Counted from the first letter of the stretch, positions 3,998-22,202 are shown. The stretch: DNA of 64,000 nt from Lepidodermella squamata (GCA_047495785.1 JBLDXI010000030.1:496001-560000), one strand, 5' to 3'. Program-made: numbers and translations. Notes: generated by a model from the letters alone, not told the origin.

Positions 3998-4126
3998 AGT
4001 GTGCTATTAATTGAATCAGTCGAGCTTGATTGAATGATCAAAATTATGATTAATGCCTAATAAAATTAATAAGGAATAAGTAATAAGTACCGGTGTTTTT
4101 ATCTGTAGTAATAGCAGCTTTACACA

Positions 4127-7100
4127 TCACACTGATACATTGCGTATAAATGAGTGTCCATGCGCATATGTGCTCACGCCGTCGCTGCGTACCCATCTTT
4201 TATCATCATATGGACATAGCGCTACTTTAGTACTTTGAATAGTTACCAGCTTATGATTAAACGATCGAATTTGATTGAACGTAGCTTTAGTCACTACATG
4301 CTTCAATACGCAATCTTTATAGTTTTCAAATTGTATCTGCTTTTTCACACAATGTTTGACAACTCCTTTAGCTTTCTTTACTGATGTCTGTTTATAGAGC
4401 CCAGAGTTATCTCCAGCACTCGAAATTACTGTAGATTTAAAGCTATATGATTTGGATCTCAAGCCAACGAATTCAGTAATGGTTGAAAGGGTAATACCTC
4501 CCGCGCATTCATCTTTGAACTTACCAATAACTTTCTTGTTCATGTTTGAATGCAATGCGTGATCTTTAGGGTAATCACTGAAGTCCATCAGTTCTTTGAG
4601 ACTTTCCATGTCCTTATATATATCTGCTGTTTCTACATGATAACACAGTGAATCAGTATCAGTGAATAAGAGCTTCGCTTTATCGCCATAACTATTCTTT
4701 ATCACGTTGTAATGAAAATCATACATTAGAGTTTTCGATAATTCTAAAACGCTGAAACCGACAATAATCGGACGATCAAATTTAATTGATGTTTTTGCCA
4801 TATTTACGCTGCATAAATCTTCGGCAATCACTTTGGCATCTTTGAAATTTGGCTTGTTTATCAATTTTTGTAATTTCGTGGATTGAGTCACAAGTCTAAC
4901 GTCAACTCTTTTTCTTAGATTCTCCATAGTTTTTCCGAATACGGCATTATTCATTAATTTGAAGAAGTCTTTTTCAAAGTCATTTTTAGCTTCACTTCTT
5001 TTCTTAGTATTAAATTCAATATACGGTGCCAGCCATTTGGACTGCTCAAAGATCAACACTTTATGCACTTTTTTCAAAACCAAACCCATTTTCAATGCCT
5101 GCTTCAGGTTTCTGTAATGAATAATATAGCGAGTCTTGTCATATAGATTTTGAGTCAGCTTTTTCATGACTGGCGGTTTCGGCAGCTTCAATTCTTGGAT
5201 AACATTTTGCATGAAAGGGCTAGGGTTGCAACTTGTCTGCTCAGGGCAGAATGGATAGTCATTATGCGCATCGTGCAGCGTTGCAGGATATTCTAAATCT
5301 ACCATAAACATATATCCAGTGTTATCATCATCTCCTAAATTCATTATAAATTCGGTGGTATATTTATCCAAGTTATTTTCCCATTGATATCGTCCCAATG
5401 GTAATACTTGTGACATGGCATAGCCGTAAAGATTATTAGCATCCAGGTATATTATATATGAATCAGGCTTCGCCGGATCGTATTCTAACATGTATTTGTT
5501 GTTTGCTCCTGCATATCTATGAGTAATTACGCTGACACCGCCTCGAATTCCCTCCTCTACAAATGTTAGCATTTCTTCGTTATCTAATAGTTCGATTTGA
5601 ACTCCGGTTTTCTTCAACATGGCATCCCAGGACAAGCTTGGTGCCGTTAAATAATGAGCAGGATCCAAAGTATAATACTTCATACATGTTTCCCTGAAAC
5701 TTTCGAAACAATCAGCTAAAAGTAACACATCAGTTTTCAAATAAAGGTTATGATAGTCTTTCAGTTTTCGACAGCCAAATTCATTATATACACGTTTAGC
5801 GTGTTCATAATCTTCTCGTGATATTGGTACCCGCTCTAATTTCTCATCTATTGAACTTGAGTGAAGGCTGCTAGAAAAATGTTCAATATCTGGTAGCGAA
5901 GGCTCCTCCAATTTTTCAGGGCCATCCATATATTCATAGGGATAAAATCCCTTCTGTTTTATCAGATCTAATTGCAGGTCTGTCAACCTCGAAAATTGAC
6001 TCTTTAAATGAGGAAACGCTCCGTTTGATTTTTTCAAATTTTGTACCAAATCAGCCAAACTTATTGACATGAAATTAAGACTATCCATGAACCTTAATTT
6101 TCCAACGTTGAAGGAAATGAATTTCTCTGAGCTATTCGCAATCGCTCCTATCTGTAGCAGAGGTTTCTTGCTACGATTTTTCTGATCCTTTGGTAATTTA
6201 TCCCTTTCTTTTATTCTTTCCTCATTTATTTCCTCTATCACTTTTCCAGCTGCCTGTAAAATCAAATGTGCATCATAACCTTTCAAATTATGAAATACAA
6301 CTGGTATATTGATATTTCTATAGCTATATTTCAAGTTACATAAACTATGAGCTGCACCTCTGTAATAACCTGTCAGATGATCATGATCTCGCACTTTTTT
6401 CAATTTCTCTGAATCATTGACAATGACGCCTTTGCAAATATGACACTGTGATGCCTTATTGTATTCCATTTCTTGTTGCCTTGTCAATTGCATCGCCTTG
6501 TTGGTATTTCTCAGATATGTACTCAAAAAAGATTCGGTTTTTATCAAATATCTCAGAAATTTCTCAGTGCATTCCTCGCCCTCAAATTTTACATACCGTG
6601 AGGTGATGCTATCCACATCACTTGCAAGGTAAGCACCAAAAGAGTTCGCTACATGTTTCTGAAAAATATTCGAGTTTTCTCCCTTTTTCTCATCTGTTTT
6701 AACCAGGAAACTCTCTGCGTCGCAATAAAATACAAATGGTATTTTTAGTTGTTTGCCATAATTTTTAAACATAACCGATTCGCCCTTGGGCATTTCAACT
6801 TTAACTTTCCCATTTTTCTCATTGCACTTCTGTCTATCAATATGTTGTTGCTTTGACTCAGCGCTATTAAAACCTTGAAAACATTTGAAACACCAGAATC
6901 GCTTATGCTCATGCTTGTTCACTCGTGATAAAAGTGCACTTGGATTTTTAATCCAGCAGTAATGTGCTTGCTTATTTTCAACAATTCTGAGCAGATTAAC
7001 TTCTTCTCGAAATTTTTTATCTGATACGTAAAACGGGAAGAGGACCTCCTTATCAATTTTCCCACATTCAATAATGTTGATTCGTATTTTATTCATATCT

Positions 7101-8368
7101 TCCAATTTCGATATATCTTTAATGGTAACTGGGAATTTTACGCCTTCAATTTTTATCGTACTTTCATATTTAACATACTTCGAAACTCGGTAAGCATGAT
7201 CATCAAATCGATGTCGTGAAGCGAGAATGCTCCATATTATGCATTTATTATCTTTGTTCTGGACATTAATGACAGCTTTTTTATTAGCGATCCATTTGGG
7301 TGTCTCAATATATGAGCCAGCTGCCAGCGGCGTATACGTAAATGTACATACGCTTGTATTTCCAATACCTAACAAAGTCCCACCAGTATCTCGCTGATGG
7401 TATTCTTGAATACTCGACCCCATTTGTGTGAACATATTTTCTACAACACCAGGGATATCTTCGCAACTAATTATTGTTGGGGCTCTCTCATTTGATGAAC
7501 TCCATTTATAAGTTGGTGTCGCGTTATTTTCTTGATAATATAAGGCTGTTATCAACACAGCTTTTACAGGGCCGCGTTCAGTGAATTGTTTCCAATATTC
7601 GTTTATTACTTTAGGTTTAATTTTCCTTGCATATTCGAAAAAATCTATTTCATATGTGTTTGTTGGCTCTAAGTCAGTGCGAGAAAGAATATTTCTGAAA
7701 TGTCCGAAATTATCAACATTTACTATATGAAAGTAATCATCCTTTTCTAAGCTGTTAGTACCTTTAACGTATTTATATCCATCCGCAATGAGCTGATGAA
7801 ACTTATTGCCATCAATTTTGATCTTATTCATTGTTTTTGGGTTGACAACAAACCCAATCTTTTCCTGTCTTTTAAACATTTTATTTGAATTATCTTTAAT
7901 AGCATAGCCCTGTCTTCGCAAGCTTTCATATCTTTCTCCACCTATCAGTATAGGCTCACCATTTATCGGGTCAAATACATATCCTTCTCTTATCTTATTT
8001 TTATATTTGATTAATATGTTATTTTCAGAATCGTAAGCATGTGTATTTCTAACCATTTTTACAAATTCTCTTGATCCGACTTCAATTTTTCCGCCATTTA
8101 AAAATGCTATTTTTTTTAGTTGGTTTCTATATTTTTCATATTTATAATTACGTTCTATCAATTGATTAAATATTTCCCCATTAACAGGGATTAAACTTCC
8201 GTCTTCAGGATTAACAACATGATGAATATACGGCTGACCATTTTTAAGCCATTTTTTACCAATTTCATCATATGTAAAACCCTCTTTAATGTACTTTCTG
8301 AAGGCTTTTCCACCCATTTTCATATCAAAACCCTTTGGACTCTGTATGCACGAATTTTCTTGACTCAT
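4127..8368 (-). CDS. polB: Protein-primed family B DNA polymerase (pPolB), 1413 aa
   Basis: Exo motifs CDAES, FHNLKGYDAH, YLKTDV; Pol motifs YLDANNLYG, KLMNNAVFGK, FTDTDS; EndoVII/HNH-like insert CHIC...RDHDHLTG...HSLCN; candidate OTU-like Cys/His region (DNKC...HY). Confidence 0.97.
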   Translation of the reverse strand: MSQENSCIQSPKGFDMKMGGKAFRKYIKEGFTYDEIGKKWLKNGQPYIHHVVNPEDGSLIPVNGEIFNQLIERNYKYEKYRNQLKKIAFLNGGKIEVGSREFVKMVRNTHAYDSENNILIKYKNKIREGYVFDPINGEPILIGGERYESLRRQGYAIKDNSNKMFKRQEKIGFVVNPKTMNKIKIDGNKFHQLIADGYKYVKGTNSLEKDDYFHIVNVDNFGHFRNILSRTDLEPTNTYEIDFFEYARKIKPKVINEYWKQFTERGPVKAVLITALYYQENNATPTYKWSSSNERAPTIISCEDIPGVVENMFTQMGSSIQEYHQRDTGGTLLGIGNTSVCTFTYTPLAAGSYIETPKWIANKKAVINVQNKDNKCIIWSILASRHRFDDHAYRVSKYVKYESTIKIEGVKFPVTIKDISKLEDMNKIRINIIECGKIDKEVLFPFYVSDKKFREEVNLLRIVENKQAHYCWIKNPSALLSRVNKHEHKRFWCFKCFQGFNSAESKQQHIDRQKCNEKNGKVKVEMPKGESVMFKNYGKQLKIPFVFYCDAESFLVKTDEKKGENSNIFQKHVANSFGAYLASDVDSITSRYVKFEGEECTEKFLRYLIKTESFLSTYLRNTNKAMQLTRQQEMEYNKASQCHICKGVIVNDSEKLKKVRDHDHLTGYYRGAAHSLCNLKYSYRNINIPVVFHNLKGYDAHLILQAAGKVIEEINEERIKERDKLPKDQKNRSKKPLLQIGAIANSSEKFISFNVGKLRFMDSLNFMSISLADLVQNLKKSNGAFPHLKSQFSRLTDLQLDLIKQKGFYPYEYMDGPEKLEEPSLPDIEHFSSSLHSSSIDEKLERVPISREDYEHAKRVYNEFGCRKLKDYHNLYLKTDVLLLADCFESFRETCMKYYTLDPAHYLTAPSLSWDAMLKKTGVQIELLDNEEMLTFVEEGIRGGVSVITHRYAGANNKYMLEYDPAKPDSYIIYLDANNLYGYAMSQVLPLGRYQWENNLDKYTTEFIMNLGDDDNTGYMFMVDLEYPATLHDAHNDYPFCPEQTSCNPSPFMQNVIQELKLPKPPVMKKLTQNLYDKTRYIIHYRNLKQALKMGLVLKKVHKVLIFEQSKWLAPYIEFNTKKRSEAKNDFEKDFFKLMNNAVFGKTMENLRKRVDVRLVTQSTKLQKLINKPNFKDAKVIAEDLCSVNMAKTSIKFDRPIIVGFSVLELSKTLMYDFHYNVIKNSYGDKAKLLFTDTDSLCYHVETADIYKDMESLKELMDFSDYPKDHALHSNMNKKVIGKFKDECAGGITLSTITEFVGLRSKSYSFKSTVISSAGDNSGLYKQTSVKKAKGVVKHCVKKQIQFENYKDCVLKHVVTKATFNQIRSFNHKLVTIQSTKVALCPYDDKRWVRSDGVSTYAHGHSFIRNVSV

Positions 8369-8371
8369 TCT

Positions 8372-8484
8372 TATATATATTATATTAAGAAAATAATTCC
8401 TTATATAGAAATTTCAATTTTTTTCTTTTTCCATATTCTTTTTGGAAATGCTTAAAGAATTATTTTCTTGATATAATATATATA
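8372..8484. promoter_or_regulatory. Inverted-repeat bidirectional promoter between polB and the 8495 gene
   Basis: 8372-8399 and 8457-8484 are 27/28-identical inverted copies (GAATTATTTTCTT(A/G)ATATAATATATATA), each ending just before an ATG. Confidence 0.65.
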
Positions 8485-8494
8485 GAAATTCACT

Positions 8495-8746
8495 ATGACA
8501 ACAATTAATAAGCAACCCAGAGGTAGACCTAAAAAATACCTGACAGAAGAAGAAAAATTATTAGCATATAAAGAGGTTCATAAAAACAGCTGTAAGAAGT
8601 ACTGGCGTGAAACGTTTCACATGGCGCAATTGAACGATACGATTCTTAATACGACAGATAAGCTGTTGGTTATTTCAGAAAAGCAATTGGAGGAACTTGT
8701 CAGTAACATCATCGCGAATAAATTGAAAAATATTTTCTTGACTTGA
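8495..8746 (+). CDS. Small basic protein with AT-hook-like PRGRPKK motif
   Basis: 83-aa ATG ORF divergent from polB, preceded by TATATA motif. Confidence 0.7.
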   Translation: MTTINKQPRGRPKKYLTEEEKLLAYKEVHKNSCKKYWRETFHMAQLNDTILNTTDKLLVISEKQLEELVSNIIANKLKNIFLT

Positions 8747-8866
8747 TATATAGATGTGAAATATAAATATTACTTAACGCATTGAAGCCAGTTTGAACTC
8801 ATTCTTATATATCCACCCTTTTCCCATTTTGACTCAGTAGGGAGTAATTCATAAATGCATCACTCT

Positions 8867-10333
8867 CTAATCAATGATATTTTCTGCTTTTTCCCATGTA
8901 GGATGGTCATATCCTGCCCATTTAATTAAAACCATATCTTTCCCTTTAACTTTCTTCCTTTGTAATATTTGCTCAACTCGGTGAATACTGTTGTCATATA
9001 AATCACTCTCATTTATTTTAGATTTTAGTAACTCCTGCTCATAAAAACTTCCAACTACTTCCTCTCCGTCTAATGCTTTTAATTTATATGTTCTTGGATA
9101 TGTATCATTGACTTTTACTATTCTCAACAATTCTTCAGACCAATTTGGATGAAATCCTTTTTCAAAATGCTCTTTAATCCTACTAATCCTGACAATGTCA
9201 TTCAGCATGAATTTTGGCTTTTTCAATTTTGGCGAGGGATTAGGATAGAGACTTCGTAATACCCTTTCTTTGTTATTCGGATTTACTGCTTCTGACGGGG
9301 TCATCTTAATTGATCTATGATTCTTATTGTTATAAGCATCCAACAAAGTATCTAACATATTTATCCATCTTCGTGTATTTTCGAGAGTAAACCTCTTCCA
9401 CATCATAGTTTTAAGTGTTCTATTAAATCGCTCTATAATTGGGTTATGAAAGTTTTCATACGTCGAATATCTGATGACATCATTTGTTTTTAACCATTTT
9501 GTGAATATTGAGTTATAAAATTCACTACCTTCATCAACCCAAATATTGTTTGGTTTTCTGTTACTTTTATTTATAACAGTCATGAATGCGTCAAATACAG
9601 TTTTAGCATCTTTTGTTTTTAATGGGACAGCCCATGCATATTTTGAAAAGCAATCAATGATAGTTAAAAGATATTTGTAGCCATCATTGTCATCTGCCAA
9701 GTCAACCATGAAACATATATCCATTCCCCATGTTTCATCAACATCATGGAGGATAACCCTGCGTCTTGGAAATCGCTTTCTAACCGGTTTATGTAATTCA
9801 TCAGCTAGAATTGGGAAGTTTACTTTACTCGTTTCTAAAGGTTCGGAAAGATTAGGAACATGCTTGATTTTCTTAATCTTTTTAGTTTCATTTTTACTTA
9901 CTAGTTTTGGCTCTTCATAACTTACTTTCGTCTTTCGTTCACGAAGTGTCATTCCTTTTCCTTGAAACTTATCAGCTAAACCACCCTCTGTAAACGTTTT
10001 GTAAACAAAAGCTGCCATCAGTTTTTCATTACTATTTTTATTCGGATCCTTAGCAATTTTCAAAGCTTTTTCAGCCAAAATTCTATCAGATATTGTTCGT
10101 GGCTCCCTATCTCTATGAAAATAATAAGCTGCATCATGTTCCATTGCTGCTCTATCCAAATCATTTATGCCTTTGTATCCTTCGTTTATCCTTTGAATAA
10201 ATTTAGTGCCGGGGCCAGCATATGAATACTTGTTCGTATTGTTAAAACTACCTTTCCGCACATATTCACCGAAACCTGGAAAACTAGGTAAATGCAATTC
10301 GGTCGGCAAGTTATTAATTATCTGATCAAACAT
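8867..10333 (-). CDS. PLA2-like domain fused to RVE (DDE) integrase with C-terminal chromodomain
   Basis: YAGPG...DRAAMEHDAAY (parvovirus-type PLA2); DDE motifs WGMDI, WVDEG, IERFNRTLK; chromodomain VEQIL...LIKWAGY..PTWE. Confidence 0.93.
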   Translation of the reverse strand: MFDQIINNLPTELHLPSFPGFGEYVRKGSFNNTNKYSYAGPGTKFIQRINEGYKGINDLDRAAMEHDAAYYFHRDREPRTISDRILAEKALKIAKDPNKNSNEKLMAAFVYKTFTEGGLADKFQGKGMTLRERKTKVSYEEPKLVSKNETKKIKKIKHVPNLSEPLETSKVNFPILADELHKPVRKRFPRRRVILHDVDETWGMDICFMVDLADDNDGYKYLLTIIDCFSKYAWAVPLKTKDAKTVFDAFMTVINKSNRKPNNIWVDEGSEFYNSIFTKWLKTNDVIRYSTYENFHNPIIERFNRTLKTMMWKRFTLENTRRWINMLDTLLDAYNNKNHRSIKMTPSEAVNPNNKERVLRSLYPNPSPKLKKPKFMLNDIVRISRIKEHFEKGFHPNWSEELLRIVKVNDTYPRTYKLKALDGEEVVGSFYEQELLKSKINESDLYDNSIHRVEQILQRKKVKGKDMVLIKWAGYDHPTWEKAENIID

Positions 10334-10408
10334 TTCTGAAGTATAGCTAGAAGTTCAATGGTTTTAAAAAATCCTAATATTTTCTAAATTTCTAATATAT
10401 TTATAAGA

Positions 10409-11110
10409 ATGATTAATTTCGATGATATAGTTTCCAAAGGCAGTAATAATTATATAAATCCAAATCCGTTTTTCCCACAGCATCCTGCTAGAATATTAAT
10501 TATCGGGCCTAGTAATTCAGGTAAAACTAATGATTTGCTGAACATCATACATAACTCATTTTTTCATAAAATATACGTTTATTCCAAAACACTTGATGAG
10601 GATAAGTATCAATTTCTAATAAATGTTCAACATCGGAAAGAAGAGGAATTAAAGAAATCGGGTATCTCCGAAAGTCTCATTCATTTTAGCACAGATTTAA
10701 AAGATGTAATACCTATGGAAGATCTGGATAAACGTTATCAACATCTATACATTTTTGATGATGTATGTTTAACCGAAAAGAAAAGTCAAGAAAAATACAT
10801 TGGCGATTTATATATAAGAAGTAGAAAATACAACTGCTCAGTTGTGTATTTATCTCAATCGTATTTCAAAGTTCCAAAAATAATCAGGGACAACGCTTTA
10901 TTCGTTGTGTTAAAGCATTTGAATGATTTTAGAGAGGTTAAAACTATTCATAACATATATGCATCCGAAATAGCAAGAGAAGACTTTATGAAAAAATATG
11001 AAGAAAGCATCAGCACTTACAATCGCCATGGTAGTTTCATTATTGATTGTAATTCCAGGCATAAGTTTCTGAAACTGAGAGCAAACTATGTAGGCATATT
11101 TCATTCGTAA
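10409..11110 (+). CDS. A32/FtsK-like DNA packaging ATPase
   Basis: Walker A GPSNSGKT, Walker B YIFDD, RSRK...YLSQ...IRDN motifs. Confidence 0.93.
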   Translation: MINFDDIVSKGSNNYINPNPFFPQHPARILIIGPSNSGKTNDLLNIIHNSFFHKIYVYSKTLDEDKYQFLINVQHRKEEELKKSGISESLIHFSTDLKDVIPMEDLDKRYQHLYIFDDVCLTEKKSQEKYIGDLYIRSRKYNCSVVYLSQSYFKVPKIIRDNALFVVLKHLNDFREVKTIHNIYASEIAREDFMKKYEESISTYNRHGSFIIDCNSRHKFLKLRANYVGIFHS

Positions 11111-11139
11111 TTATCTAGTCATTGATTAAAAACACTTTC

Positions 11140-12252
11140 ATGACGATCAAAGAACTAACAATACCCGAACAAATTCAAATTTTGAAAAATTTGGAAAAAC
11201 AGGAAAATCTGCACAATCAAAATATCGCCCTTGCCAATGGAGATACATACACTTTGAAGCATAAATATAACGTAGAAACCGAATTGAATCCTCTAGCATC
11301 CATTCAAAATGCGATCAAACAACGACCTGTTGTCAATTCTATAGAAAAATTGAATAATAATTTAACAAGAATGAAACCTGAGGTGATAGCCAAAGAAATA
11401 GCCCAAGAAGTTAAATCTGAACTAAAGCAACCTAAATTGGAACCTTCAAGCCCATTATCAAAAAGTGAGTCATCTGATAGAGATGAAACCACAAATGAAG
11501 AATATCAAAGTGCTCGAGAGCCTGAGATCGATATTAAAAGCATTAATGAGAATGTAATCAAGAAACATAATTTCCCCCTGGTTGATGACATTGAAGCTGA
11601 TAATATTGAAGATGTCATACATGATATATCTGAATATAATAAGAGGGTTTTAGGATCACGTTTAGCTACTTTGACACGTGGCGGTAAAAAAGAATCAGAG
11701 GAATACAATCAAATAAAATTCGAAATTGGAGAACTTAAAAAATACAGGTCAGCATTAGAGAAACTAACTGGGGAACAGAGTGGCAGCGGATTTGCTAAAC
11801 CAATTCCAAAAAATTTAATAAAATTTGGGAAATATTATGCTAAGATTAAAGATCTTGCGAGTAACAAATTATGCATTAGGAAGAAAAATAATGCGATAGT
11901 TTTTAATATGAATATAACCAATGGAGTAAAACATTTGTTATTCAAAAACTACGATCCAAAGAAGTACAACTATACGAATGAAGATATTGACGTGTATAAA
12001 GAAATAATAAGAAAGACCAATTTCGAACCTAAAAAACATTCCAAGGTAAATAGGGTTATAAAAGGAGAATCACTATTTCTGAATGTCAAGGATGCAAAAA
12101 CAAGACTATTACATTGCATTGGTGAAATAAAAGCCGGTAACAACAATAAAGAAATTAAAAATGAATTAGTATCCATAGCTGATTTACTTCTGAAACATAA
12201 AAATATCTCAGATGCAGAATACAAGAATGTTTGCACGTTCGCCGGCGTGTGA
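11140..12252 (+). CDS. Polinton virion-module protein of unknown function
   Basis: Long ORF between ATPase and minor capsid (first ATG 11140); internal QSGSG site; C-terminal GEIKAGNNN...NEL motif. Confidence 0.7.
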   Translation: MTIKELTIPEQIQILKNLEKQENLHNQNIALANGDTYTLKHKYNVETELNPLASIQNAIKQRPVVNSIEKLNNNLTRMKPEVIAKEIAQEVKSELKQPKLEPSSPLSKSESSDRDETTNEEYQSAREPEIDIKSINENVIKKHNFPLVDDIEADNIEDVIHDISEYNKRVLGSRLATLTRGGKKESEEYNQIKFEIGELKKYRSALEKLTGEQSGSGFAKPIPKNLIKFGKYYAKIKDLASNKLCIRKKNNAIVFNMNITNGVKHLLFKNYDPKKYNYTNEDIDVYKEIIRKTNFEPKKHSKVNRVIKGESLFLNVKDAKTRLLHCIGEIKAGNNNKEIKNELVSIADLLLKHKNISDAEYKNVCTFAGV

Positions 12253-12306
12253 ACGTTGGCACGTTTGCAATATTTGTAAATTCGCCAATATCTAACTTAA
12301 TACTAA

Positions 12307-13047
12307 ATGAGTATGATATTTTTGCCATTAGAAAATAATCAGAATAACAAGTCAACACTAAATAATACTATAGATCGCTATCTTAATCAAAAGATCAACT
12401 TTTCAGGACGGAAAATAGCTGTTTCCTATATTCATTTTTATGACACATTTCATAATGTTTCTGGGAAATATAATAACAACAAACTAAAATACATAACAGA
12501 AGGTGAAACATTTGAGGTTACATTTCCTGATGGGACCTATACTTACAAAGATTTTGATAATTACTTACACTTCTCCATGAAAAATAATAATCACTATTCC
12601 CTGGATAAGGAATCAGGGGTTGAAATTTATCCAATAAATCTCGTGGTAAATAGTGTATTTTCTTGTCTCAGCATTAGGATATCAGAGAAATCTAGCCTTT
12701 TAATAGAATCTGACGGGATTTCAAAATTTTTAGGAATCGAAATTGGAAATTACGATAGTGATTTCAATTCTCAGAAAATACCTGACATCACAATGGGGTT
12801 TGATACTTTATTTGTTCATTGCAATGTTGTTGATAATTCTATAATTCCTGAATATAACACAGTCATTTTCACATGTCCCATGAATAGGAGGTTCGGTGAG
12901 CATGTAAATATAACACCGAATGAAAAACGGTATTTAGATTGTAATAACGCAAATACGCAAAATATTAAAATCTGGCTGACAAACCAAGACGGATTGCCTA
13001 TTCACTTTGTTGAAAACAAATGGGGCATTGGATTGGATATTTTATGA
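12307..13047 (+). CDS. Minor capsid protein (penton)
   Basis: 246 aa, beta-rich; HNVS...NN, FPDGTY, LFVHCNVV, IWLTNQDG.PI.F pattern typical of polinton pentons; position in the module. Confidence 0.8.
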   Translation: MSMIFLPLENNQNNKSTLNNTIDRYLNQKINFSGRKIAVSYIHFYDTFHNVSGKYNNNKLKYITEGETFEVTFPDGTYTYKDFDNYLHFSMKNNNHYSLDKESGVEIYPINLVVNSVFSCLSIRISEKSSLLIESDGISKFLGIEIGNYDSDFNSQKIPDITMGFDTLFVHCNVVDNSIIPEYNTVIFTCPMNRRFGEHVNITPNEKRYLDCNNANTQNIKIWLTNQDGLPIHFVENKWGIGLDIL

Positions 13048-13068
13048 AATTTCTAGTTTGATAATAAA

Positions 13069-13380
13069 ATGAAACAGAAATCTATAAAGGTTTATATTCA
13101 GGGTAGAGGATTTGCTGAAGTGAGTAGGCAATTATTAGGGAAATTAATTAGCATAGGTAGAGAACCAGTTCAGTCTTTATTAAAATCTGCTTTGAAATCT
13201 GGAAGTGAAACAGTAGGCGATAAATTGGGGAATTATGTAGCAGACGCAATTACTGAAAAATTAATTCCTGATTCAAAACAAAATATAAAAGCCATCGAAG
13301 AATTGGAAAATAAAATTAAAAAAGAGATTGCTGATTATAGTTCTGGTAAAGTCGTTGGCAAAGGGTTCAAAAAAATCTAG
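13069..13380 (+). CDS. Small basic core-like protein with GxG sites
   Basis: 103 aa, IQGRGF and VVGKGF; TCTAG upstream. Confidence 0.7.
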   Translation: MKQKSIKVYIQGRGFAEVSRQLLGKLISIGREPVQSLLKSALKSGSETVGDKLGNYVADAITEKLIPDSKQNIKAIEELENKIKKEIADYSSGKVVGKGFKKI

Positions 13381-13393
13381 TTATATTGATAAA

Positions 13394-14773
13394 ATGTTAC
13401 AGCAAGAAATCATTAACAATCTGTTTGAAACCAACGAAATTGATGACAGATTATTTGAGAAGAAGGTATGGACTGAAACTCCCGCGCAGAATTTCATTCA
13501 GGATAGTCAGAGCCAACCAAACAAATTAATTTTTTCAACGATAAACTTGAAAGACAATTTTCTATTAGTTCGGGAAGGGTACATTGAATTTCAGCTTCAC
13601 TTTGTCAGAAATAATGCTAAGGATTTTGCTGCTACTGATAAATACGCTATTCGCAATCATGTACTAAGTTTATTCGAATCAATTGAAATTCAAATTTCAG
13701 ACAGTGATCATAAAATTGAAGAATTGAGATTCACCGAACATTGGGCAAATATCAACTTCTTGTTAAAATGGAGTAAAGAATATGCTGAGACGTATGGAGA
13801 AGAATCGTTGTTTTCTAGGGATTGTCCATTGCCAAGAGCAACAAGAACACTTAGCGAAGATGTAACAGCTGATTCATTTGACGGATCCAAAGCTACTGCG
13901 AATAATGGCCTTATTGTAAGGAGTTCATTTGTAAAAAGTAACCAAATGATATGTACTCTGTTCTTGAAAGATCTTCCATTTTTCAATTCATTCAATGGTA
14001 TTTTCACCAAATCAAGATTCAGAATTATATTAACCCCGAATTATAGTAAAAGCCTAATATATGTCATTGCAGATGCAGCCACGGGTGAAACTGCTGGCAT
14101 GACATATAAAATATCGAAAGCAAATCTGATGATTCCAGAAGTTACGCTCATGAATAAAAATAAGTTGGAAGTTTTAGAAAAATTCAATTCAGGATTTTCA
14201 AAAGTTCACAAATGGATGTCGATCGAACCATTCCAATCACAGCAATTTGCAAATAATATTCAGAATATTCAATGGACAGTGTCAACAGAAATTAAGAAAC
14301 CAAATTACATTTATTTAGTATTAATTCCTGATTATACTGATACTGAAATACCTAAAAAATTAAACCAGATATACAACCTATGGAACATTACTTCATATTC
14401 TTTGTTGATTAATAACAAGGAAGCTTTTAATGAGTCAAATGTTAGTTTTAATTCATTGAAGGCCCATAAATTATATCAATATATAAAACAGAATATGTCT
14501 CAATCAGGTGACAGAGAAAGTTTAAATATAGGATCACAAATTTCATATCTTGATTTCTGCAATTTGTATAGAATCTTATGTTTCAATCTAAATGATATCG
14601 ATGCAAGTTCAATATATAATTCACGTGCTGATAATACTTGTTCAATCGTTTTCAAAGCTACTGTTGGAGCAGTTAATAAACCATTAGTAATTTATAGCTT
14701 TATTGAACGTGAAAAAGAAATCGCGTTTAATTATAAGCATGGAACTTTGGATATTTCTCTGCAAAGTCTATGA
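13394..14773 (+). CDS. Major capsid protein (double jelly-roll, hexon-like), 459 aa
   Basis: Size, beta-rich composition and position in the morphogenetic module; likely start ATG 13394, 13 nt after TCTAG. Confidence 0.82.
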   Translation: MLQQEIINNLFETNEIDDRLFEKKVWTETPAQNFIQDSQSQPNKLIFSTINLKDNFLLVREGYIEFQLHFVRNNAKDFAATDKYAIRNHVLSLFESIEIQISDSDHKIEELRFTEHWANINFLLKWSKEYAETYGEESLFSRDCPLPRATRTLSEDVTADSFDGSKATANNGLIVRSSFVKSNQMICTLFLKDLPFFNSFNGIFTKSRFRIILTPNYSKSLIYVIADAATGETAGMTYKISKANLMIPEVTLMNKNKLEVLEKFNSGFSKVHKWMSIEPFQSQQFANNIQNIQWTVSTEIKKPNYIYLVLIPDYTDTEIPKKLNQIYNLWNITSYSLLINNKEAFNESNVSFNSLKAHKLYQYIKQNMSQSGDRESLNIGSQISYLDFCNLYRILCFNLNDIDASSIYNSRADNTCSIVFKATVGAVNKPLVIYSFIEREKEIAFNYKHGTLDISLQSL

Positions 14774-14798
14774 AAAGAAAATCTAGTCTTCCAATAAA

Positions 14799-15416
14799 AT
14801 GAGTAGATATTTTGAATATGAAATTCCTCTGTCTGATGGGCAAATTCAAAAATTACAATCAGGGATAAATAATAGGAAATGCATAACATTGCTAATAAGT
14901 AAGAAAGATATTCATTCAAAAACTAACTTGAAAAAAGTGTTCCTTACGAAATCCCAAATCAATAAAATAGAAAAACATAGAACTATGAACACGGGAGTGG
15001 AAGTACAATTTAGCCTTTCACAGTTAAAAAAGAACCAAACAGGCGGAATGATTCCTTTACTGCCGATATTAGCGAAAGTTGGATCAATTGCTGCCCCATT
15101 GGCCATTTCTGCAGTATCTGGTTTAGTCAATTCAGCTGCTAATGCAATAGGCAATAAACTTGCAGGGAATGGCGTAACTGAAAATGTGAATCTCAATATT
15201 CCTAAAAAGGATTTGGCTGAGATTATCAAATACATTGATGTTTTGGAAAATAAAAATATACTACCTGGCGGATCTAAATCAGCATCTGAGAAAGATATTG
15301 AACAGAGTGGCGGCGCATTTGTTCTACCGCTGATTGCTAGTTTATTGGGTACGTTTTTACCCACATTATTCCAGAAAGGAAATGGCATATATTTGCCATG
15401 GGAGTCAAAAAACTGA
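14799..15416 (+). CDS. Core/membrane-active precursor with adenovirus pX-like GG-hydrophobic helices
   Basis: QTGG|MIPLLPIL, QSGG|AFVLPLIASLLG, AGNG and KGNG motifs. Confidence 0.75.
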   Translation: MSRYFEYEIPLSDGQIQKLQSGINNRKCITLLISKKDIHSKTNLKKVFLTKSQINKIEKHRTMNTGVEVQFSLSQLKKNQTGGMIPLLPILAKVGSIAAPLAISAVSGLVNSAANAIGNKLAGNGVTENVNLNIPKKDLAEIIKYIDVLENKNILPGGSKSASEKDIEQSGGAFVLPLIASLLGTFLPTLFQKGNGIYLPWESKN

Positions 15417-15853
15417 AAAAATTCTTCCCTCTTTCAAATAGGCAAATTGATAATATTTTATCTATGAAATTGGGGAGAGAATACAGCGGATGCTTTCCGC
15501 GAGATGGCCTACCGTATGTTTTGAAAAATGGTTATTATGTCATAAATTTAGATAATCAATCTGGAACGCATTGGGTATGCATGCAAGTGACTGATAGCAA
15601 TATAGTTTATTTTGATAGCTTCGGATTTATATGCCCAAATGAAATAATAGTTAGAAAAGCTGCGAGGGATATATATTACAACACCCATGAGATTCAAAAT
15701 ATGAAATCGGTGGCCTGCGGTTTTTACTGTATCTATTTTTTGTGTGAATTGTACAGAGGCCGAGATAAACTTGAGATACTGCTGGATTTCGAGAACAATA
15801 ACAATCTCTCGAACGACTTGAAATTGATGAAATGGTTTAATGATAACTTCTAG
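15398..15853 (+). CDS. Adenain-like (C5) cysteine maturation protease
   Basis: GTHWV (His), YFDSFG (Asp), IQ...ACGFYC (Gln, Cys). Confidence 0.92.
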   Translation: MGVKKLKKFFPLSNRQIDNILSMKLGREYSGCFPRDGLPYVLKNGYYVINLDNQSGTHWVCMQVTDSNIVYFDSFGFICPNEIIVRKAARDIYYNTHEIQNMKSVACGFYCIYFLCELYRGRDKLEILLDFENNNNLSNDLKLMKWFNDNF

Positions 15854-15866
15854 TTAGAATGTAAGA

Positions 15867-15998
15867 ATGTTTTGTATGAAATGTAAAATCGTTACTGGGA
15901 ATGCTAATGAGCAAATTGCATATACAAAAAATAAGAAAAAAGTCTTAAAATGTATATGCATTTTATGCAAGTCCAAAAAGTGTAAATTTATTACTTGA
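15867..15998 (+). CDS. 43-aa zinc-ribbon protein (DUF5679-like), absent from the ORF track
   Basis: MFCMKCK...TKNKKKVLKCICILCKSKKCKF; TCTAG 13 nt upstream. Confidence 0.75.
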   Translation: MFCMKCKIVTGNANEQIAYTKNKKKVLKCICILCKSKKCKFIT

Positions 15999-16029
15999 AG
16001 CTTTGTTACTGTTATTAGGTAAGTTGCTA

Positions 16030-16524
16030 ATGGAAAGAAAAATGACTGATGAAGAGCTTTTCGATTTGCATTACAAAATCGATAGAAGTGGGTCATATGA
16101 AAACCTTGCACACAAATATATGACTTGCGAAGTTTGCAACATTGATCTATTTCCTGATTATCATGAAAATTTCAATATTTGTACGTCTTGCGGCCGATGC
16201 TATCCTTATTGTAATCCTGAAGGTAGCACCAGGTTTTCGCCGCCTTACAAAAGGGCGTGGCATATCATGTCTGTTATCAGAAAGCATGACTTACACATTA
16301 ATGGTAATGAGCAAGACAAAATCATGAATTTATACAAAGAATTAGATAGACTATATTTCAAGAAATTTCCAAAGAAAAATATGATACATATACTATTTGT
16401 GTTACAATATATGTGTAAAAAATTAGGCTTTGTACATATAGCCCAAAGAATCAAGATTATAAAAAATGAAAAACTTTTGAAAAAATGGGACGATAAATTA
16501 AATCTAGTATTTAACCAAGAATGA
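16030..16524 (+). CDS. VLTF3-like (poxvirus A2/NCLDV late transcription factor-like) protein
   Basis: CxxC...CxxCG zinc ribbon then YKR..H, KN...FVL..., IK..KL...D pattern. Confidence 0.6.
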   Translation: MERKMTDEELFDLHYKIDRSGSYENLAHKYMTCEVCNIDLFPDYHENFNICTSCGRCYPYCNPEGSTRFSPPYKRAWHIMSVIRKHDLHINGNEQDKIMNLYKELDRLYFKKFPKKNMIHILFVLQYMCKKLGFVHIAQRIKIIKNEKLLKKWDDKLNLVFNQE

Positions 16525-17255
16525 AAAGCTCCGTAATTTTTATCCCTAAAGAATGGAATGAACATAGCAAAAATAAAGGAAACGATAAATATATACGAAG
16601 TGATGGATCAGTGCCATTTGATGGAAATGTAAATATGAATAATAAAAGGATAGAGAATGTTGGCGACCCTGTGCATAATAGCGATGCAGTTAATCTGAAA
16701 GCTTTCGTGACAGAACGTGAGAAATTTATAAAGGGCTGTGAAGATAAACTAACATCACATGTTTCGACTTACAATACGTTCAAAGCCAAAGTTGAACAGG
16801 ATATGACGAAAATATCCGGTTTAAATCGGGAAAATATGTCTCTTTTTATGTCTGGGCATAATAGCATTGAAAATAAGAAATTCCTAGCATTTAATATTTT
16901 ACATTCTACTCATATGTCAATCGATAGCAGTGGTGCTTTTTCAGAGGGAGACGACGAAGGAGATGCGATTTTACCTGGTTCAGTGGCAATTAAGGAACCC
17001 CTTTTTGCCCGCATACAGCTGTGGATAGCCGTAAATGGAGAAAGCACCTCAATCGCGATCAGCCTAGTGAAGAATGAGCATCAAGTTTTGGGGAATAAAT
17101 ACTCCACATATAATCAGCTCGGAGAAACACGTTTAGAACACTTGGAAATGATTGAAAACTTTGATAGAGGTGATAAATTTCAGGTTTTATTGACAACCAA
17201 GTCTAAAATAACTTGTAAATTTTATCTAAGAATTTCTAGTTTATTATATAAATGA
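16521..17255 (+). CDS. Fibre/spike-like protein with beta-rich (possibly C1q/TNF-like) head
   Basis: DGS..F.G..NM...RI.NV.DP....DA.N shaft motif, coiled segment, C-terminal F..GD.F.V strand pattern. Confidence 0.6.
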   Translation: MKSSVIFIPKEWNEHSKNKGNDKYIRSDGSVPFDGNVNMNNKRIENVGDPVHNSDAVNLKAFVTEREKFIKGCEDKLTSHVSTYNTFKAKVEQDMTKISGLNRENMSLFMSGHNSIENKKFLAFNILHSTHMSIDSSGAFSEGDDEGDAILPGSVAIKEPLFARIQLWIAVNGESTSIAISLVKNEHQVLGNKYSTYNQLGETRLEHLEMIENFDRGDKFQVLLTTKSKITCKFYLRISSLLYK

Positions 17256-17860
17256 CCGAGCATAATATTTATCCAACAGCCCCTAAATTGGAAACGCGTT
17301 TAGAAACAAACAGTACTCAGGAATTTAGGATTAGTGAAATTAAAAAACTAAAAGAAGTAATGAAAAACGAGATTGATTTTCGCCTTAAATGCTACGATAA
17401 GTATAAGAGATCAGCTAATGCACTTAATGGTGTTAATATCGGCCTGTCATCGATGTCAATTGGACTTGGCGTAGGAGGAATAGGGCTGCTAACAACTATA
17501 ATAAGCACTCCTATAGTTATTGTTTTAGAAGCTATTTCTATCGGATCTGGACTTGTTAGTATTGGGTTTGGTATTGGTGCTAAGCAGCTCATGAAAAAGG
17601 CTGAAAAGCATGAGAGATTGTGCATGCTAGCTATAAGCAAGCTGAACTCGATAAATGATCTAATATCGAAAGCACTGAATGACAATTTCATTAGTGATAG
17701 TGAGTATAAAATCATAACTAAAGAATATGAAAAATACTTAGAGATGAAGTCTCCGATTAAAAAAGATTTAGATAGTAAATCTTCTGTTAGTGATAAAGAA
17801 ATAAAAAAGGAGTTCATAAAAAAGATCCAAGAATTACAATTAGATGTAAAAAGTCGATAA
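17252..17860 (+). CDS. Two-TM membrane-active protein (adintovirus 'gasderminX'-like) with N-terminal PTAP
   Basis: IYPTAP, Gly-rich hydrophobic hairpin, KHE...LA.SKLNSI..LISKAL.D..IS..E motif. Confidence 0.72.
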   Translation: MTEHNIYPTAPKLETRLETNSTQEFRISEIKKLKEVMKNEIDFRLKCYDKYKRSANALNGVNIGLSSMSIGLGVGGIGLLTTIISTPIVIVLEAISIGSGLVSIGFGIGAKQLMKKAEKHERLCMLAISKLNSINDLISKALNDNFISDSEYKIITKEYEKYLEMKSPIKKDLDSKSSVSDKEIKKEFIKKIQELQLDVKSR

Positions 17861-18151
17861 TTCATTTGAATATTCATACGGCCGAACAGGATAGCCGAAA
17901 TTTAACTTTGGGCTTGGCACCTTTCTCGAATTCTGAGAATCTGCCACCTTATTCACCCTAATAATTGTTGGCTTCTTAGCTGAATACTCCTTACGTAATT
18001 TCAGTCCAACGTAGCCACTAATAATCACCAAAAAGATTACACATGTATACATAACTATCGTTTTCATTTCCAAATTGTTGATGTGGGCAGCTTTAACAAT
18101 TTCCTTGGTATGCCTTAACATCTCTTCCATGTAACTACAGGAATCGTGCAT
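17840..18151 (-). CDS. Small single-pass membrane protein
   Basis: 103 aa, TM segment IVMYTCVIFLVIISGYVGL; TATATAG upstream. Confidence 0.6.
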   Translation of the reverse strand: MHDSCSYMEEMLRHTKEIVKAAHINNLEMKTIVMYTCVIFLVIISGYVGLKLRKEYSAKKPTIIRVNKVADSQNSRKVPSPKLNFGYPVRPYEYSNELSTFYI

Positions 18152-18163
18152 TTTTATTTTTTA

Positions 18164-18529
18164 CTATATACTCTCCCTGAGATTTTTCATTTCAGTGAGA
18201 AATTCTTTGATTTCGAGCTTTGCTTTCTCTTTCCTCTCTTTCTGACTTACTTTTCTAATTTCAGCCTGTTTTTCTTGTTGCTGCTTAGTAGTTAAGAAGC
18301 TGTTATAAAGAGACTCAAACTTAATCTTCTCTTTTTCCATGTCTAACAATTTTCGCTCAATGTCTTTCGCCGATCCTTTTTTCATCTTTTCGAGTTCCCT
18401 GTACTGTTTACTTAACGTTTTGAATCCTACGGAAATATCCTTAATTTCTTGTTTTAACTGCTCTTGGATGCTTTCATTATCATCCAACATTTCATCCACT
18501 TCTGTCAGCGCTATGAATGTACCTGGCAT
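18164..18529 (-). CDS. Coiled-coil protein, tandem copy 1
   Basis: 121 aa, E/K-rich heptads; paralog of 18614-18895. Confidence 0.7.
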   Translation of the reverse strand: MPGTFIALTEVDEMLDDNESIQEQLKQEIKDISVGFKTLSKQYRELEKMKKGSAKDIERKLLDMEKEKIKFESLYNSFLTTKQQQEKQAEIRKVSQKERKEKAKLEIKEFLTEMKNLRESI

Positions 18530-18613
18530 GTCTATATTAGTAGTCGAGAAATTTATTTTCGCTTTCTTCTCGCCTGAACTTTATTCATCGGCAAAATTTT
18601 TAGTGGATATTGA

Positions 18614-18895
18614 TTATTTTCTAATTTCAGCCTGTTTTTCTTGTTGCTGATTAGCAGTTAAGAGGCTGCTATAAAGAGACTCGAACTTAATCTTCTCTTT
18701 TTCCATGTCTAACAATTTTCGCTCAATTTCTTTCTCCGATCCTTTTTTCATCTTTTCGAGTTCCCTGTACTGTTTACTTAACGTTTTGTATCCTACGGAA
18801 ATATCCTTAATTTCTTGTTTACACCGCTCTAGGATGCTTTCATAATCTTCCATCATTTCAATCACTTCTGTCAGCGCTACGAATGTATCTGGCAT
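18614..18895 (-). CDS. Coiled-coil protein, tandem copy 2 (C-terminally truncated)
   Basis: 366-bp tandem duplication; ORF stops at the duplication junction. Confidence 0.65.
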   Translation of the reverse strand: MPDTFVALTEVIEMMEDYESILERCKQEIKDISVGYKTLSKQYRELEKMKKGSEKEIERKLLDMEKEKIKFESLYSSLLTANQQQEKQAEIRK

Positions 18896-18918
18896 GTCTA
18901 TATAAGTTGTGGAGAAAT

Positions 18919-19215
18919 TTATTTTCGCTTTCTTCTCGCCTGAACCTCATTCATTGACATAATTTTTACTGGATACTGATTATTCTCTTCCGGGGGTAGT
19001 AAATTCACCTTAATATTGCCTCCATGCTGATGTTTATAGCCGGAGTTTTCTCTAAATTCTTGATTCGAGCCTAGCCATTTCTGTAAATTATAATATATCA
19101 TCCCTTTGCTCACGTTGAATTTCGCCGCAATTTGTAATACAGGAGTTTTGCCTTTAAAATATTCTTCAATAATTTTGGCTTTAGTTTCTGTGCTTATTTG
19201 TTTCGTTCTCAACAT
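18919..19215 (-). CDS. Helix-turn-helix DNA-binding protein
   Basis: STETKAKII...VLQIAAKFNVSKGMIY HTH pattern; basic C-terminus RRRKRK-like. Confidence 0.7.
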   Translation of the reverse strand: MLRTKQISTETKAKIIEEYFKGKTPVLQIAAKFNVSKGMIYYNLQKWLGSNQEFRENSGYKHQHGGNIKVNLLPPEENNQYPVKIMSMNEVQARRKRK

Positions 19216-19244
19216 ACTTACCTTATATACAGAAATTTTTTTAA

Positions 19245-20150
19245 AGTTTGAAAGTCTGAACGTTTAAACGTTTGAACTTCGCAGGCGTTGGCATGTGCCC
19301 TTTTACAAGCATATTTACACGTTTGAACGGTTGAAAGCTTGAACGTTTGAACGTTTGAAAGCTTGAATGTTTGAACGTTCGAATTATCAGTGTAAATTGT
19401 CAGATCAGCATGATATCGGTCGAACAGCCCAACTCGGCGATTACAGTTTCGAATCATCGGCCGACTTTGCGGATTAAAATCGCCTGCGGCTAACCTCGAT
19501 TGCGGCTAAAAATTGTGACCGAATTTATTTTTCAAATTTGCCCGGGTTTTATGAATTATCAGCTGATTTTGTGTATAACAGCTAAACTTGAGAAACAAGT
19601 TACAAATTTATTATTCTGAAAATTCCGAAGATGTCGCATACAAATCGCCTGCGGCTAACCTTGGGTTAATTATGACCGAATTTACTTTTCATCGCATTTT
19701 TTGGCGTTGACAGAGCAGACATTACATCATCTTATAAGCTGCTATTCGCATTCGTAGACATAGATCATATGAATCGGTAGGCTCTGCTGAAACTCCTAGA
19801 CCTTAGGAAAATTTGGTTGTCAAATCTCTCACAACGCTGGACACTGAAAATTGTTGAACCTTCGTTTGAAATCTGAACGTTCAAACGTTCGAACTTCATA
19901 GGCGTTGGCATGTACCCTTTTACCAGCATATTTACACGTTTGAACGGTTGAAAGCTTGAATGTTTGAACGTTCGAATTATCAGTGTAAGTTTGAAGATTA
20001 GATCTTTGTCAGATCAGGGTATTTAGCAAGATATCGGTCGAACAGCCCAACACATTCACGCTTACTGTTTCGAATTCAGTGAATCATCAGCCGTCTTCAC
20101 GAATGAAAATCGCATGCGGCCAACCTTGGGTTTATTGTGACCGAATTTTT
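19245..20150. repeat. Direct duplication (19245-19530 vs 19864-20150) rich in TTGAACGT-type 8-mers
   Basis: Two aligned ~280-bp blocks with repeated TTGAACGT/TTGAAAGC units. Confidence 0.85.
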
Positions 20151-20305
20151 AATTCCTTAATTCTTGGCTTCAGCATAGTCAGTTACATGAAGCGCGAGAG
20201 TAACTCTCTGAATGTAATGAACGATACAGTCGAGCTAGCCAACGTGACTTTCCGTCCACAAGTGCCGGCTAAACCTCTGCGCGACGAGATTGGAGATCGG
20301 ACGTA

Positions 20306-21008
20306 CGCCGAAATCGCGATTTCTGATACCGATTTCGACACGATCAACGCCGAATTTTTACAGTGGCCGTTGATAGTTTGTACAGAATTTCAAGGGCTAT
20401 CTAATGATATAAAATTTACAGAACGGCGATACTGGGTTTCGACTGAAAATTGATTTGTCAGCCAAATTGATTTGTCATCTAGGCCAAAATCGCGATTTCT
20501 GAGGCCGATTTCGACCCGATCGTTGCCGAATTTGTACAGCGGCTGTTGGCAGCTTGTACAGAAGTTCAAGGGCTATCTAATGATATAAAAATTATAGAGT
20601 GACGATACTTGATTCGCCTTGAAATTGCGATCAAAATCAGTTGATTTAGCATGCCAGCAATGCCAAAAAAGATATTTCTAGAGCCGATTTGTACCATATC
20701 GACGCTGAATTTTTACAGCGGCCGTTGTTAGTTTATATAGAATTTCAAGGGCTATCTAAAGGTATAAAATTCATGGAACGGTGATACTGGTTTCCGGCTA
20801 AAATAGCGATCTAAGTCGGTCAAATTGGCGTTCCGCCACAGCCAAAATCGTGATTTCCGAAGCCGATTTCGACATAATCGGCGGCGTTCTTGTTCAGCGG
20901 GCGCTGTTAGTTTGTACAGAATTTCAAGGGCTATCTAGTGATATAAAATTTATAGAACGGTGATACTGGGTTCGCCTGGAAATTGCAAGAAAAGTCGGTC
21001 AAATTGGT
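20306..21008. repeat. ~178-bp tandem repeat, 4 diverged copies, inside the Polinton
   Basis: Anchor CAAGGGCTATCTA at 20391, 20567, 20746 and 20925. Confidence 0.9.
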
Positions 21009-21450
21009 GTGCTAAATCTAAACGCCATTTTTAATTTTTTATTGCCTGATTCCCAGAGATGTTGACTCTGTCTGCTTTGAACTATTGCCTAGCACGCGCT
21101 CAAGACTTCGTCAAATTTTTTAATTGTTTCCGTTCATTCTCAGGACGGTACTGGATACATTTGAAGATTTACCATTGCGCTCAAAAGTGCAACTTGGGCG
21201 TGGACCCGTAGGCTGTAGGTGCTCATAGATAAATTCACTGAAGTTTAGTGCTTTCCGACCGAGTGTAGTATCTTTGGAGATTTACCATGAATACGGTGTC
21301 CAAATGCATTGAGCTCTATGGTAGTGCTCTATGGAGCTCCATGGATTCTACGGAAAAAACTCACAGTGAATGCAAGTGCGGTAATTTTTAAGGAGGCTGA
21401 AAGCATTCGCTATTATAATTTCAGCATTTCACATTTCACATTTCACTAAG

Positions 21451-22015: not shown

Positions 22016-22202
22016 AAAAATTCAGGCCAATGAATACCGCCACATGCCTTATTGAAAAAAAATGTACACTTAAATATTACTTTGAATAAACGAAAAAACG
22101 TTTTAAGCCACTGCGGATTTTTTAATGTCGCAATGAATAGACATTCTCTGTAAGAAGGTTCAATGAGTTATTTTTGCCTTTCACAATGCCGAGTGCCAAA
22201 TG

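Follow-up and report, generated by a model that had tools for sequence, protein, structure and literature searches.

A position-fixed TCTA box precedes virion, packaging and integrase genes of an animal Polinton and is a candidate compact promoter

Results

A complete Polinton and its genes

The window analysed here is a 64,000-nt stretch of DNA from Lepidodermella squamata (GCA_047495785.1, JBLDXI010000030.1:496001-560000), and positions 1169-22502 of it are a complete integrated Polinton/Maverick of 21,334 bp with all hallmark open reading frames (ORFs) open; the hallmark genes showed 0 breaks, that is, no internal stops or frameshifts. The element has terminal inverted repeats (TIRs), a 6-bp target-site duplication, an rve integrase, a protein-primed DNA polymerase (polB), a double-jelly-roll (DJR) major capsid protein (MCP) and an A32-type packaging ATPase, polB and the MCP being recognized through members of their families and not directly from the window protein. 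ORFs in the flanking DNA contain ANF-receptor, Cys-loop ligand-binding (two), rhodopsin-type seven-transmembrane (G-protein-coupled receptor), PAN and ankyrin domains; such receptor-type ORFs indicate that the host is an animal. An earlier reading of this DNA by a model without database searches (the sequence-only reading) had likewise placed a Polinton in animal DNA, which the TIRs, the duplication, the hallmark genes and the receptor-coding flanks bear out. The element's gene set, used for all counts below, comprises 23 genes; features of the element are given in Table 1. Ten of them, coding for packaging, virion-module and integrase functions, carry a short TCTA box ahead of the start codon, and the box and its possible reader are the subject of this report.

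A TCTA box at a nearly fixed distance from the ATG

Nine of the 23 genes have TCTAG or TCTAA ahead of the ATG, the 5' T falling between -18 and -16, which leaves 12-14 nt from the tetramer to the ATG. These genes are the integrase, the ATPase, ORFs 12307 and 13069, the MCP, ORF 14799, the 43-amino-acid (aa) ORF 15867, the fibre-like ORF 16521 and the two-transmembrane (2-TM) ORF 17252. The tenth, ORF 11140, is an outlier, with TCTAG at -26, 21-22 nt from the ATG. The sequence-only reading had put the box 11-13 nt before the ATGs that it listed; this stands for the integrase, ATPase, MCP and others and fails for ORF 11140, its supposed penton. Box orientation follows gene orientation at all ten sites, including that of the integrase on the opposite strand. 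Across the ten sites, T, C, T and A are invariant and are followed by G (8/10) and T (8/10), A occupies 9/10 sites at -4 and again at -3, and the flanks are 80% AT compared to 67% in the core. The integrase and ATPase genes diverge from a spacer of only 75 nt between their ATGs, which holds one box for each direction.

Extra TCTAA copies were observed at 10383 (-26, ATPase) and 17225 (2-TM ORF). Together with the box at 11114 they lie at -26/-27, about 8-10 nt upstream of the main position, which suggests a secondary preferred place in three genes.

The box is real and far beyond chance. A box at -18 to -16 was found in 9/23 genes and at 2/715 other core ATGs (binomial tail 8e-18). When 5-mers were ranked without a prior in the 40 nt upstream of genes, TCTAG was the most enriched (8/23 genes, 0.39 expected), and 0 of 2000 random sets reached 8/23; it also formed the top pair of 5-mer and position (7/23 genes), the null maximum over all pairs having a mean of 3.3 and a largest value of 5 in 500 sets. 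Motif discovery against background thus ranked first, with positional enrichment, the motif that the sequence-only reading had picked out by inspection. The extended form TCTAGT occurs seven times in the 17.6-kb core, each time on the + strand directly before a + strand ATG and nowhere else on either strand; dinucleotide shuffles contain 7.0 copies, at random places. TCTAG overall is depleted in the core (16 copies vs 27.5). Among long ORFs in the host part of the window, 1/18 shows the box pattern.

Two simpler identities for the box were considered and rejected. The tests speak against a stop-codon or ORF-calling artefact, and the sequence-only reading had also held that the boxes are not just stop codons: the box supplies the stop codon of the upstream ORF in 2/10 cases, and its TAG shares the frame of the downstream ORF in 3/9, the chance rate. 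Spacing to the next ATG is constant to within 2 nt, whereas that to the end of the preceding ORF ranges from -21 to +39. A palindromic operator is ruled out by the base after the box, T in 8/10, and by the orientation of the box, which follows the gene in 10/10.

A second, mutually exclusive box class

Another box, ATATA(A)G, lies within 30 nt of the ATG in 6/23 genes, compared to 7/716 of the remaining ATGs (7.6e-8). Its distance from the ATG is 2-13 nt, and its genes are polB, the AT-hook ORF, 17840-18151, the helix-turn-helix (HTH) gene and a pair of tandem paralogues that are duplicates of each other. The two boxes never share a gene (0/23), and the observation that polB, AT-hook, HTH and coiled-coil genes have a TATA-type box in place of TCTA, made in the sequence-only reading, was confirmed. 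That reading had also proposed a two-class programme with a late class styled after nucleocytoplasmic large DNA viruses (NCLDVs): the two box classes hold up, and the terms early and late would apply to them by analogy only. The ATATA(A)G boxes are nearer the ATG than the usual TATA-to-start distance of animal RNA polymerase II (Pol II) promoters.

The polB gene and the AT-hook ORF each adjoin one arm of a 37-nt inverted repeat, which points to one module used in both orientations. At the right end, a 366-bp tandem duplication (91%) at 18242-18988 has produced two paralogous small genes in which the upstream region and box are kept; their products differ in length by 28 residues.

Table 1. Features of the element in window coordinates. 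Box offsets give the 5' T relative to the ATG.
Feature	Position	Strand	Size	Remarks
Target-site duplication, left copy	1163-1168		6 bp	identical to right copy
Left TIR	1169-1468		300 nt	93% complementary to 22203-22502
Four small left-arm ORFs	1935-2198, 2274-2639, 2734-3153, 3240-3656	+		neither box
polB	4127-8368	-	1413 aa	ATATA(A)G class
Putative divergent promoter region, polB/AT-hook ORF	8367-8489			37-nt inverted repeat, arms 8367-8403/8453-8489, 89%
ATATA(A)G box, polB	8376-8370	-		in one repeat arm, beside the ATG
ATATA(A)G box, AT-hook ORF	8480-8485	+		in the other repeat arm, beside the ATG
AT-hook-like ORF	8495-8746	+	83 aa	AT-hook judged by eye; ATATA(A)G class
Integrase	8867-10333	-	488 aa	PLA2-like domain, rve core, chromodomain; TCTA class
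TCTAG box, integrase	10347-10351	-		-18
TCTAA box, ATPase	10391-10395	+		-18
Packaging ATPase	10409-11110	+		Pox_A32 type, Pfam E 6.5e-9, above cut-off
TCTAG box, ORF 11140	11114-11118	+		-26
ORF 11140	11140-12252	+	370 aa	no family match
TCTAA box, ORF 12307	12291-12295	+		-16
ORF 12307	12307-13047	+	246 aa	no matches; virion module by position
TCTAG box, ORF 13069	13052-13056	+		-17
ORF 13069	13069-13380	+	103 aa	
TCTAG box, MCP	13376-13380	+		-18; TAG is the stop of ORF 13069
MCP	13394-14773	+	459 aa	
TCTAG box, ORF 14799	14782-14786	+		-17
ORF 14799	14799-15416	+	205 aa	hydrophobic, Gly-rich segments; core or membrane-active protein by eye; no family match
Protease-like ORF	15398-15853	+	151 aa	no box; start overlaps preceding ORF
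TCTAG box, 43-aa ORF	15849-15853	+		-18; TAG is the stop of the protease-like ORF
Zinc-ribbon ORF CxxC...CxxC	15867-15998	+	43 aa	weak DUF5679 match
VLTF3/TFIIB-like zinc-ribbon factor	16030-16524	+	164 aa	neither box
TCTAG box, ORF 16521	16503-16507	+		-18; within end of VLTF3-like ORF
Fibre-like ORF	16521-17255	+	244 aa	PHROG tail-fibre families, E 3e-6
TCTAG box, ORF 17252	17235-17239	+		-17; within end of fibre-like ORF
2-TM ORF	17252-17860	+	202 aa	weakly SLATT-like (Pfam SLATT_5 E 3e-5, below cut-off)
Small gene	17840-18151	-		ATATA(A)G class
Tandem paralogues	18164-18529, 18614-18895	-		coiled-coil by eye; ATATA(A)G class
HTH gene	18919-19215	-		ATATA(A)G class
ATATA(A)G boxes, right-end genes	18169-18164, 18537-18532, 18903-18898, 19228-19222	-		
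Right subterminal region	19458-22202		2.7 kb	non-coding; tandem repeats of 8, 24, 179 nt
Right TIR	22203-22502			pairs with 1169-1468
Target-site duplication, right copy	22503-22508		6 bp	identical to left copy

A VLTF3/TFIIB-like factor encoded by the element

A word-indexed protein search with ORF 16030-16524 returned no relatives, and an exhaustive search returned nine. In the resulting family of ten, five members match Pfam Pox_VLTF3 (best 8e-9) and two match A2L_zn_ribbon. The AlphaFold model of the window protein (mean predicted local distance difference test score, pLDDT, 78) has as its top BFVD matches NCLDV VLTF3-like and TFIIB-like proteins, with E values of 9e-5 to 1e-3, and also matches a protein of a Tetraselmis virus. 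Family matches and predicted fold together support the assignment of this ORF as a true member of the VLTF3/TFIIB-like family, with a zinc ribbon followed by a TFIIB-like helical domain. They also uphold the suggestion of the sequence-only reading that the element has a VLTF3-like factor of its own, whose reading of the box would be a further step. VLTF3 genes have already been reported in a subgroup of Polintons, coral ones included.

With its own box and a position 31 nt ahead of the VLTF3-like gene, the 43-aa ORF 15867-15998 could be either an upstream ORF or the gene for a small zinc-ribbon protein. The heptamer GGTAAGT, which we take to resemble a splice donor, has three copies in the core, two of them directly before ATGs, those of the VLTF3-like gene (16018-16024, +) and the HTH gene (19222-19228, -).

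Proteins of relatives were informative about upstream DNA in two cases. First, in five of the eight VLTF3-like proteins that reach the C-terminus, the tail reads N/D-L-V/A followed by 1-7 residues; in the window these three codons contain the next gene's box, and the Leu codon used there accounts for 12% of Leu codons. Second, one MCP relative (74% identity) is over-called by 17 residues, and its codons -8 to -5 read K-K-S-N, compared to K-K-S-S in the non-coding window sequence across the box, which would allow for a TCTAA variant in the same position. The two cases agree with conservation of the box without proving it. No N-terminal over-calls reaching into upstream DNA were found among the polB relatives.

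Identities of the other genes

The polymerase part of polB had no match in Pfam, PHROGs or PDB sequences, even when queried in pieces. Its family has more than 6000 relatives, several of which, at 41-47% identity, carry PF03175, and several PF03175 together with PF02945. Those that are named come from cnidarians (Dendronephthya, Actinostola) and molluscs (Mytilus, Pecten, Gigantopelta), pointing to an animal Polinton lineage. The middle of the window protein (about residues 623-679) is an Endonuclease VII domain common to many relatives, some of which have C2H2 zinc fingers instead of, or besides, this insert.

The integrase matches Pfam rve (1.5e-13) and, in the PDB, the prototype foamy virus (PFV) integrase core (6e-9) and chromodomain chains. 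Ahead of the rve core, residues 35-93 form a phospholipase A2 (PLA2)-like domain of the parvovirus VP1 type, above the Pfam cut-off, and the chromodomain is C-terminal. The MCP has 15 relatives at 40-89% identity, two of which (55-57% identity) pass Pfam DJR-like_dom. The MCP-family profile matched no solved capsid protein among PDB sequences, and neither the MCP nor the ATPase matched the phage collection.

Among the remaining virion-module ORFs, the penton label given to 11140-12252 in the sequence-only reading is unsupported, its single-sequence model being mostly helical and of low confidence (pLDDT 55). With this model and with ORF 12307-13047 lacking matches, no element ORF was identified as a single-jelly-roll penton. 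The protease-like ORF has a weak Peptidase_C5 match (E 0.0065; 16.6 bits, below the 21.3 cut-off) and no PDB match.

Element ends and host setting

The coding core (~1900-19500) has a GC content of 0.31-0.36, compared to 0.41-0.45 in the remaining, host part of the window. The TIR arms differ at 22/300 positions (9 transitions, 13 transversions), yet all hallmark ORFs are open; for an element inserted with identical arms and decaying neutrally ever since, this would be odd. A 115-nt unit repeated 2.7 times (98%) lies at 3683-3997 behind the left-arm ORFs, and tandem arrays of 8-nt, 24-nt and 179-nt units span 19319-21007. Host sequences at 5-58/335-374 and 22775-22828/23100-23139 are alike in direct orientation, so that the insertion seemingly lies within a host repeat. 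Host gene families occur in local copies: two long, intron-free Cys-loop ligand-binding ORFs in opposite orientation (41752-42927, +, and 51360-52538, -) and two adjacent ankyrin-repeat ORFs at 58750-61579. Scans of the whole window for tRNAs and Rfam families gave no matches.

Discussion

A compact promoter read by the element's own factor

We infer that the TCTA box defines a compact promoter class of virion, packaging and integrase genes, probably read by the element's own VLTF3-like factor together with host Pol II, and we give this reading a probability of about 0.5. The TCTA(G/A) box would be the start-site-proximal core promoter of one co-regulated class comprising packaging, virion module and integrase. 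Each gene or gene pair would have its own box in its own direction, giving mRNA leaders of less than ~20 nt, and polB, the AT-hook, HTH and coiled-coil genes would form a second class under the ATATA(A)G box. Because the element has no RNA polymerase gene, the box would be read either by host Pol II guided by the element's own factor, which we prefer, or by a helper giant virus; in the former case the VLTF3/TFIIB-like protein would bring Pol II to the box. Within the sequence, the strongest argument for a compact promoter is the integrase-ATPase spacer: with a box for each direction in 75 nt, nothing larger than such a promoter would fit. There is precedent in virophages and polinton-like viruses for boxes right before ORFs that mark gene classes read by a helper or by the element itself. 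The presence of the integrase in the virion class, together with its entry-type PLA2-like domain, would suit an integrase carried inside the virion.

Several observations weigh against this proposal. First, at 18.4 bits the window's own VLTF3-like protein falls short of the Pfam cut-off (25 bits), and its PDB fold matches, Pol II and Pol III pre-initiation complex chains that we take to be TFIIB and Brf1, are weak (E 6e-3 and worse, TM-score 0.3-0.4). Second, the VLTF3-like gene has neither box and follows the box-bearing 43-aa ORF, which raises the question of what starts the circuit; the protease-like gene likewise lies without either box behind a box-bearing ORF. Third, animal Pol II genes do not usually start transcription so near the ATG. 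Fourth, poly(A) hexamers of the textbook pattern do not consistently follow the genes and are missing after most + strand genes, a weak negative that could mean processing of longer transcripts. Lastly, the case for conservation of the box consists of two indirect hints at the protein level.

Dependence on a giant virus

In a virophage-like alternative, the box is read by the late machinery of an NCLDV infecting the same animal, and the virion genes are silent until it arrives. TCTA with AT-rich flanks precedes 124 late genes of Cafeteria roenbergensis virus (CroV) (PMC5294985), and a TCTA motif precedes all genes of the virophage mavirus and those of type-4 endogenous mavirus-like elements (EMALEs; EMALE04) (PMC8547959, PMC6723459), in agreement with what the sequence-only reading had stated of CroV and mavirus. 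The same pattern was found here upstream of ORFs at ten sites (TCTA in 10/10, flanks 80% AT). A response to CroV is reported for motif-bearing EMALEs only (PMC10945749). For animal Mavericks, reliance on a helper has been put forward as speculation (PMC8097293), and polinton-like hyperparasites of an insect poxvirus have been reported. Against these points, no NCLDV sequence or gene was found within the window, the likeness consists of four bases and AT-richness, and only part of the genes are boxed here, in contrast to all genes in mavirus. The element's own VLTF3-like factor and chromodomain integrase fit nuclear, self-sufficient expression, and its MCP family, lacking a sequence match to any solved capsid protein, gives no sign of a virophage-type capsid. 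Helper-virus dependence is thus possible but unsupported. The corresponding view of the element as a provirophage, with virion and integrase genes silent until a giant virus supplies or triggers the box-reading factor, appears unlikely to us. In a milder form, capture of a VLTF3-like factor may have freed a once helper-dependent lineage from its giant virus.

Signals acting in RNA

About as improbable is a role in RNA processing, in which the AG of TCTAG would be a 3' splice or trans-splice acceptor joining a common leader to the ORFs, as in late units of the adenovirus type. The + strand genes are indeed closely packed one behind another (gaps of -19 to 54 nt), poly(A) hexamers are missing after most of them, and 8/10 boxes end in AG. 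However, the other two boxes are TCTAA and lack AG, the 12-nt stretch ahead of the box is rich in A (46%; pyrimidines 45%) with no pyrimidine tract, and no leader or donor was found. Moreover, both the ATPase, which opens the block, and the integrase on the other strand have their boxes within the 75-nt spacer, where there is no room for a promoter, a leader exon and an intron.

The spacer bears similarly on a signal in translation, which we consider considerably less probable still. The fixed distance from box to ATG and the tight or overlapping ORFs could suit a box that acts in the mRNA, letting ribosomes restart on a polycistronic transcript, but the integrase and ATPase are boxed with no upstream cistron. 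Lacking both an upstream cistron and room for a leader exon, these two genes weaken the translation-restart and splice-acceptor explanations alike. The box is also avoided elsewhere on both strands, the non-transcribed sense included, and this fits a DNA signal better.

Slightly less probable again is a 3'-end signal by which the box ends or polyadenylates the preceding gene's transcript: boxes do lie in or near short gaps after ORFs, but their distance to the preceding ORF ranges from -21 to +39 nt against a 2-nt variation to the next ATG, and the integrase and ATPase boxes follow no gene. Finally, chance, base composition or an ORF-calling artefact, to be considered because the box holds TAG or TAA in an AT-rich element, can be dismissed for practical purposes given the prior-free enrichment, the placement of TCTAGT and the low counts in frame (3/9), at upstream stops (2/10) and in host ORFs (1/18).

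Relation to known systems

The proposed promoter class read by the element's own factor can be set beside four kinds of known element or virus. With mavirus and EMALE04 the element shares TCTA in AT-rich flanks directly upstream of ORFs (PMC8547959, PMC5294985, PMC6723459, PMC10945749), and also an rve integrase, a protein-primed polB, an A32-type ATPase, a jelly-roll capsid and TIRs. It differs from mavirus, in which all genes are boxed, in its animal host, in having the box at 10/23 genes and in its own VLTF3-like gene. Compared with mavirus spacing and flanks as the papers describe them, the box here adds G and T (8/10 each) after the tetramer and A at -4/-3 (9/10).

The gene set, 6-bp duplication, TIRs and invertebrate host resemble those of animal Maverick-Polintons and adintoviruses (Polintoviricetes). 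VLTF3, SLATT and PLA2-like genes are already listed for adintoviruses, Polintons or their kin; in adintoviruses the PLA2-like domain is on a core-protein-like gene, whereas here it is fused to the integrase. In the literature searched, an incomplete collection, we found no description of promoters or transcript starts of animal Polintons. Element type and regulatory logic are thus each known, but the logic has yet to be described in animal Polintons.

To our knowledge, no protein has been established as the reader of the CroV late box. With the VLTF3 (poxvirus A2L family) of NCLDVs, the factor described here shares a zinc ribbon and helical domain, and the two systems share a short AT-rich box abutting structural-gene ORFs. 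The factor is much shorter, at 164 aa compared to roughly 200-700 aa for the listed viral matches, and the element, unlike NCLDVs, encodes neither a viral RNA polymerase nor a capping enzyme nor further late factors. PgVV-14T, a polinton-like virophage of an alga, carries its helper's early motif and makes single-gene transcripts. It and similar elements resemble the present one in having same-strand ORFs, each with its own short upstream box; the box of PgVV-14T is the early motif of a known helper, and the box here is another one.

If the provirophage view were true, links of the virophage type between integrated elements and giant viruses would reach beyond protists into animals. More generally, a private, position-fixed box together with an element-encoded VLTF3/TFIIB-like factor provides a handle on the expression of animal Polintons that can be checked in sequence. 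With descriptive data, it would make testable whether animal Mavericks are self-sufficient viruses or depend on helpers, and whether the likeness in regulation of virophages and giant viruses is inherited or convergent, a question debated as 'virophage-first' against 'nuclear-escape'.

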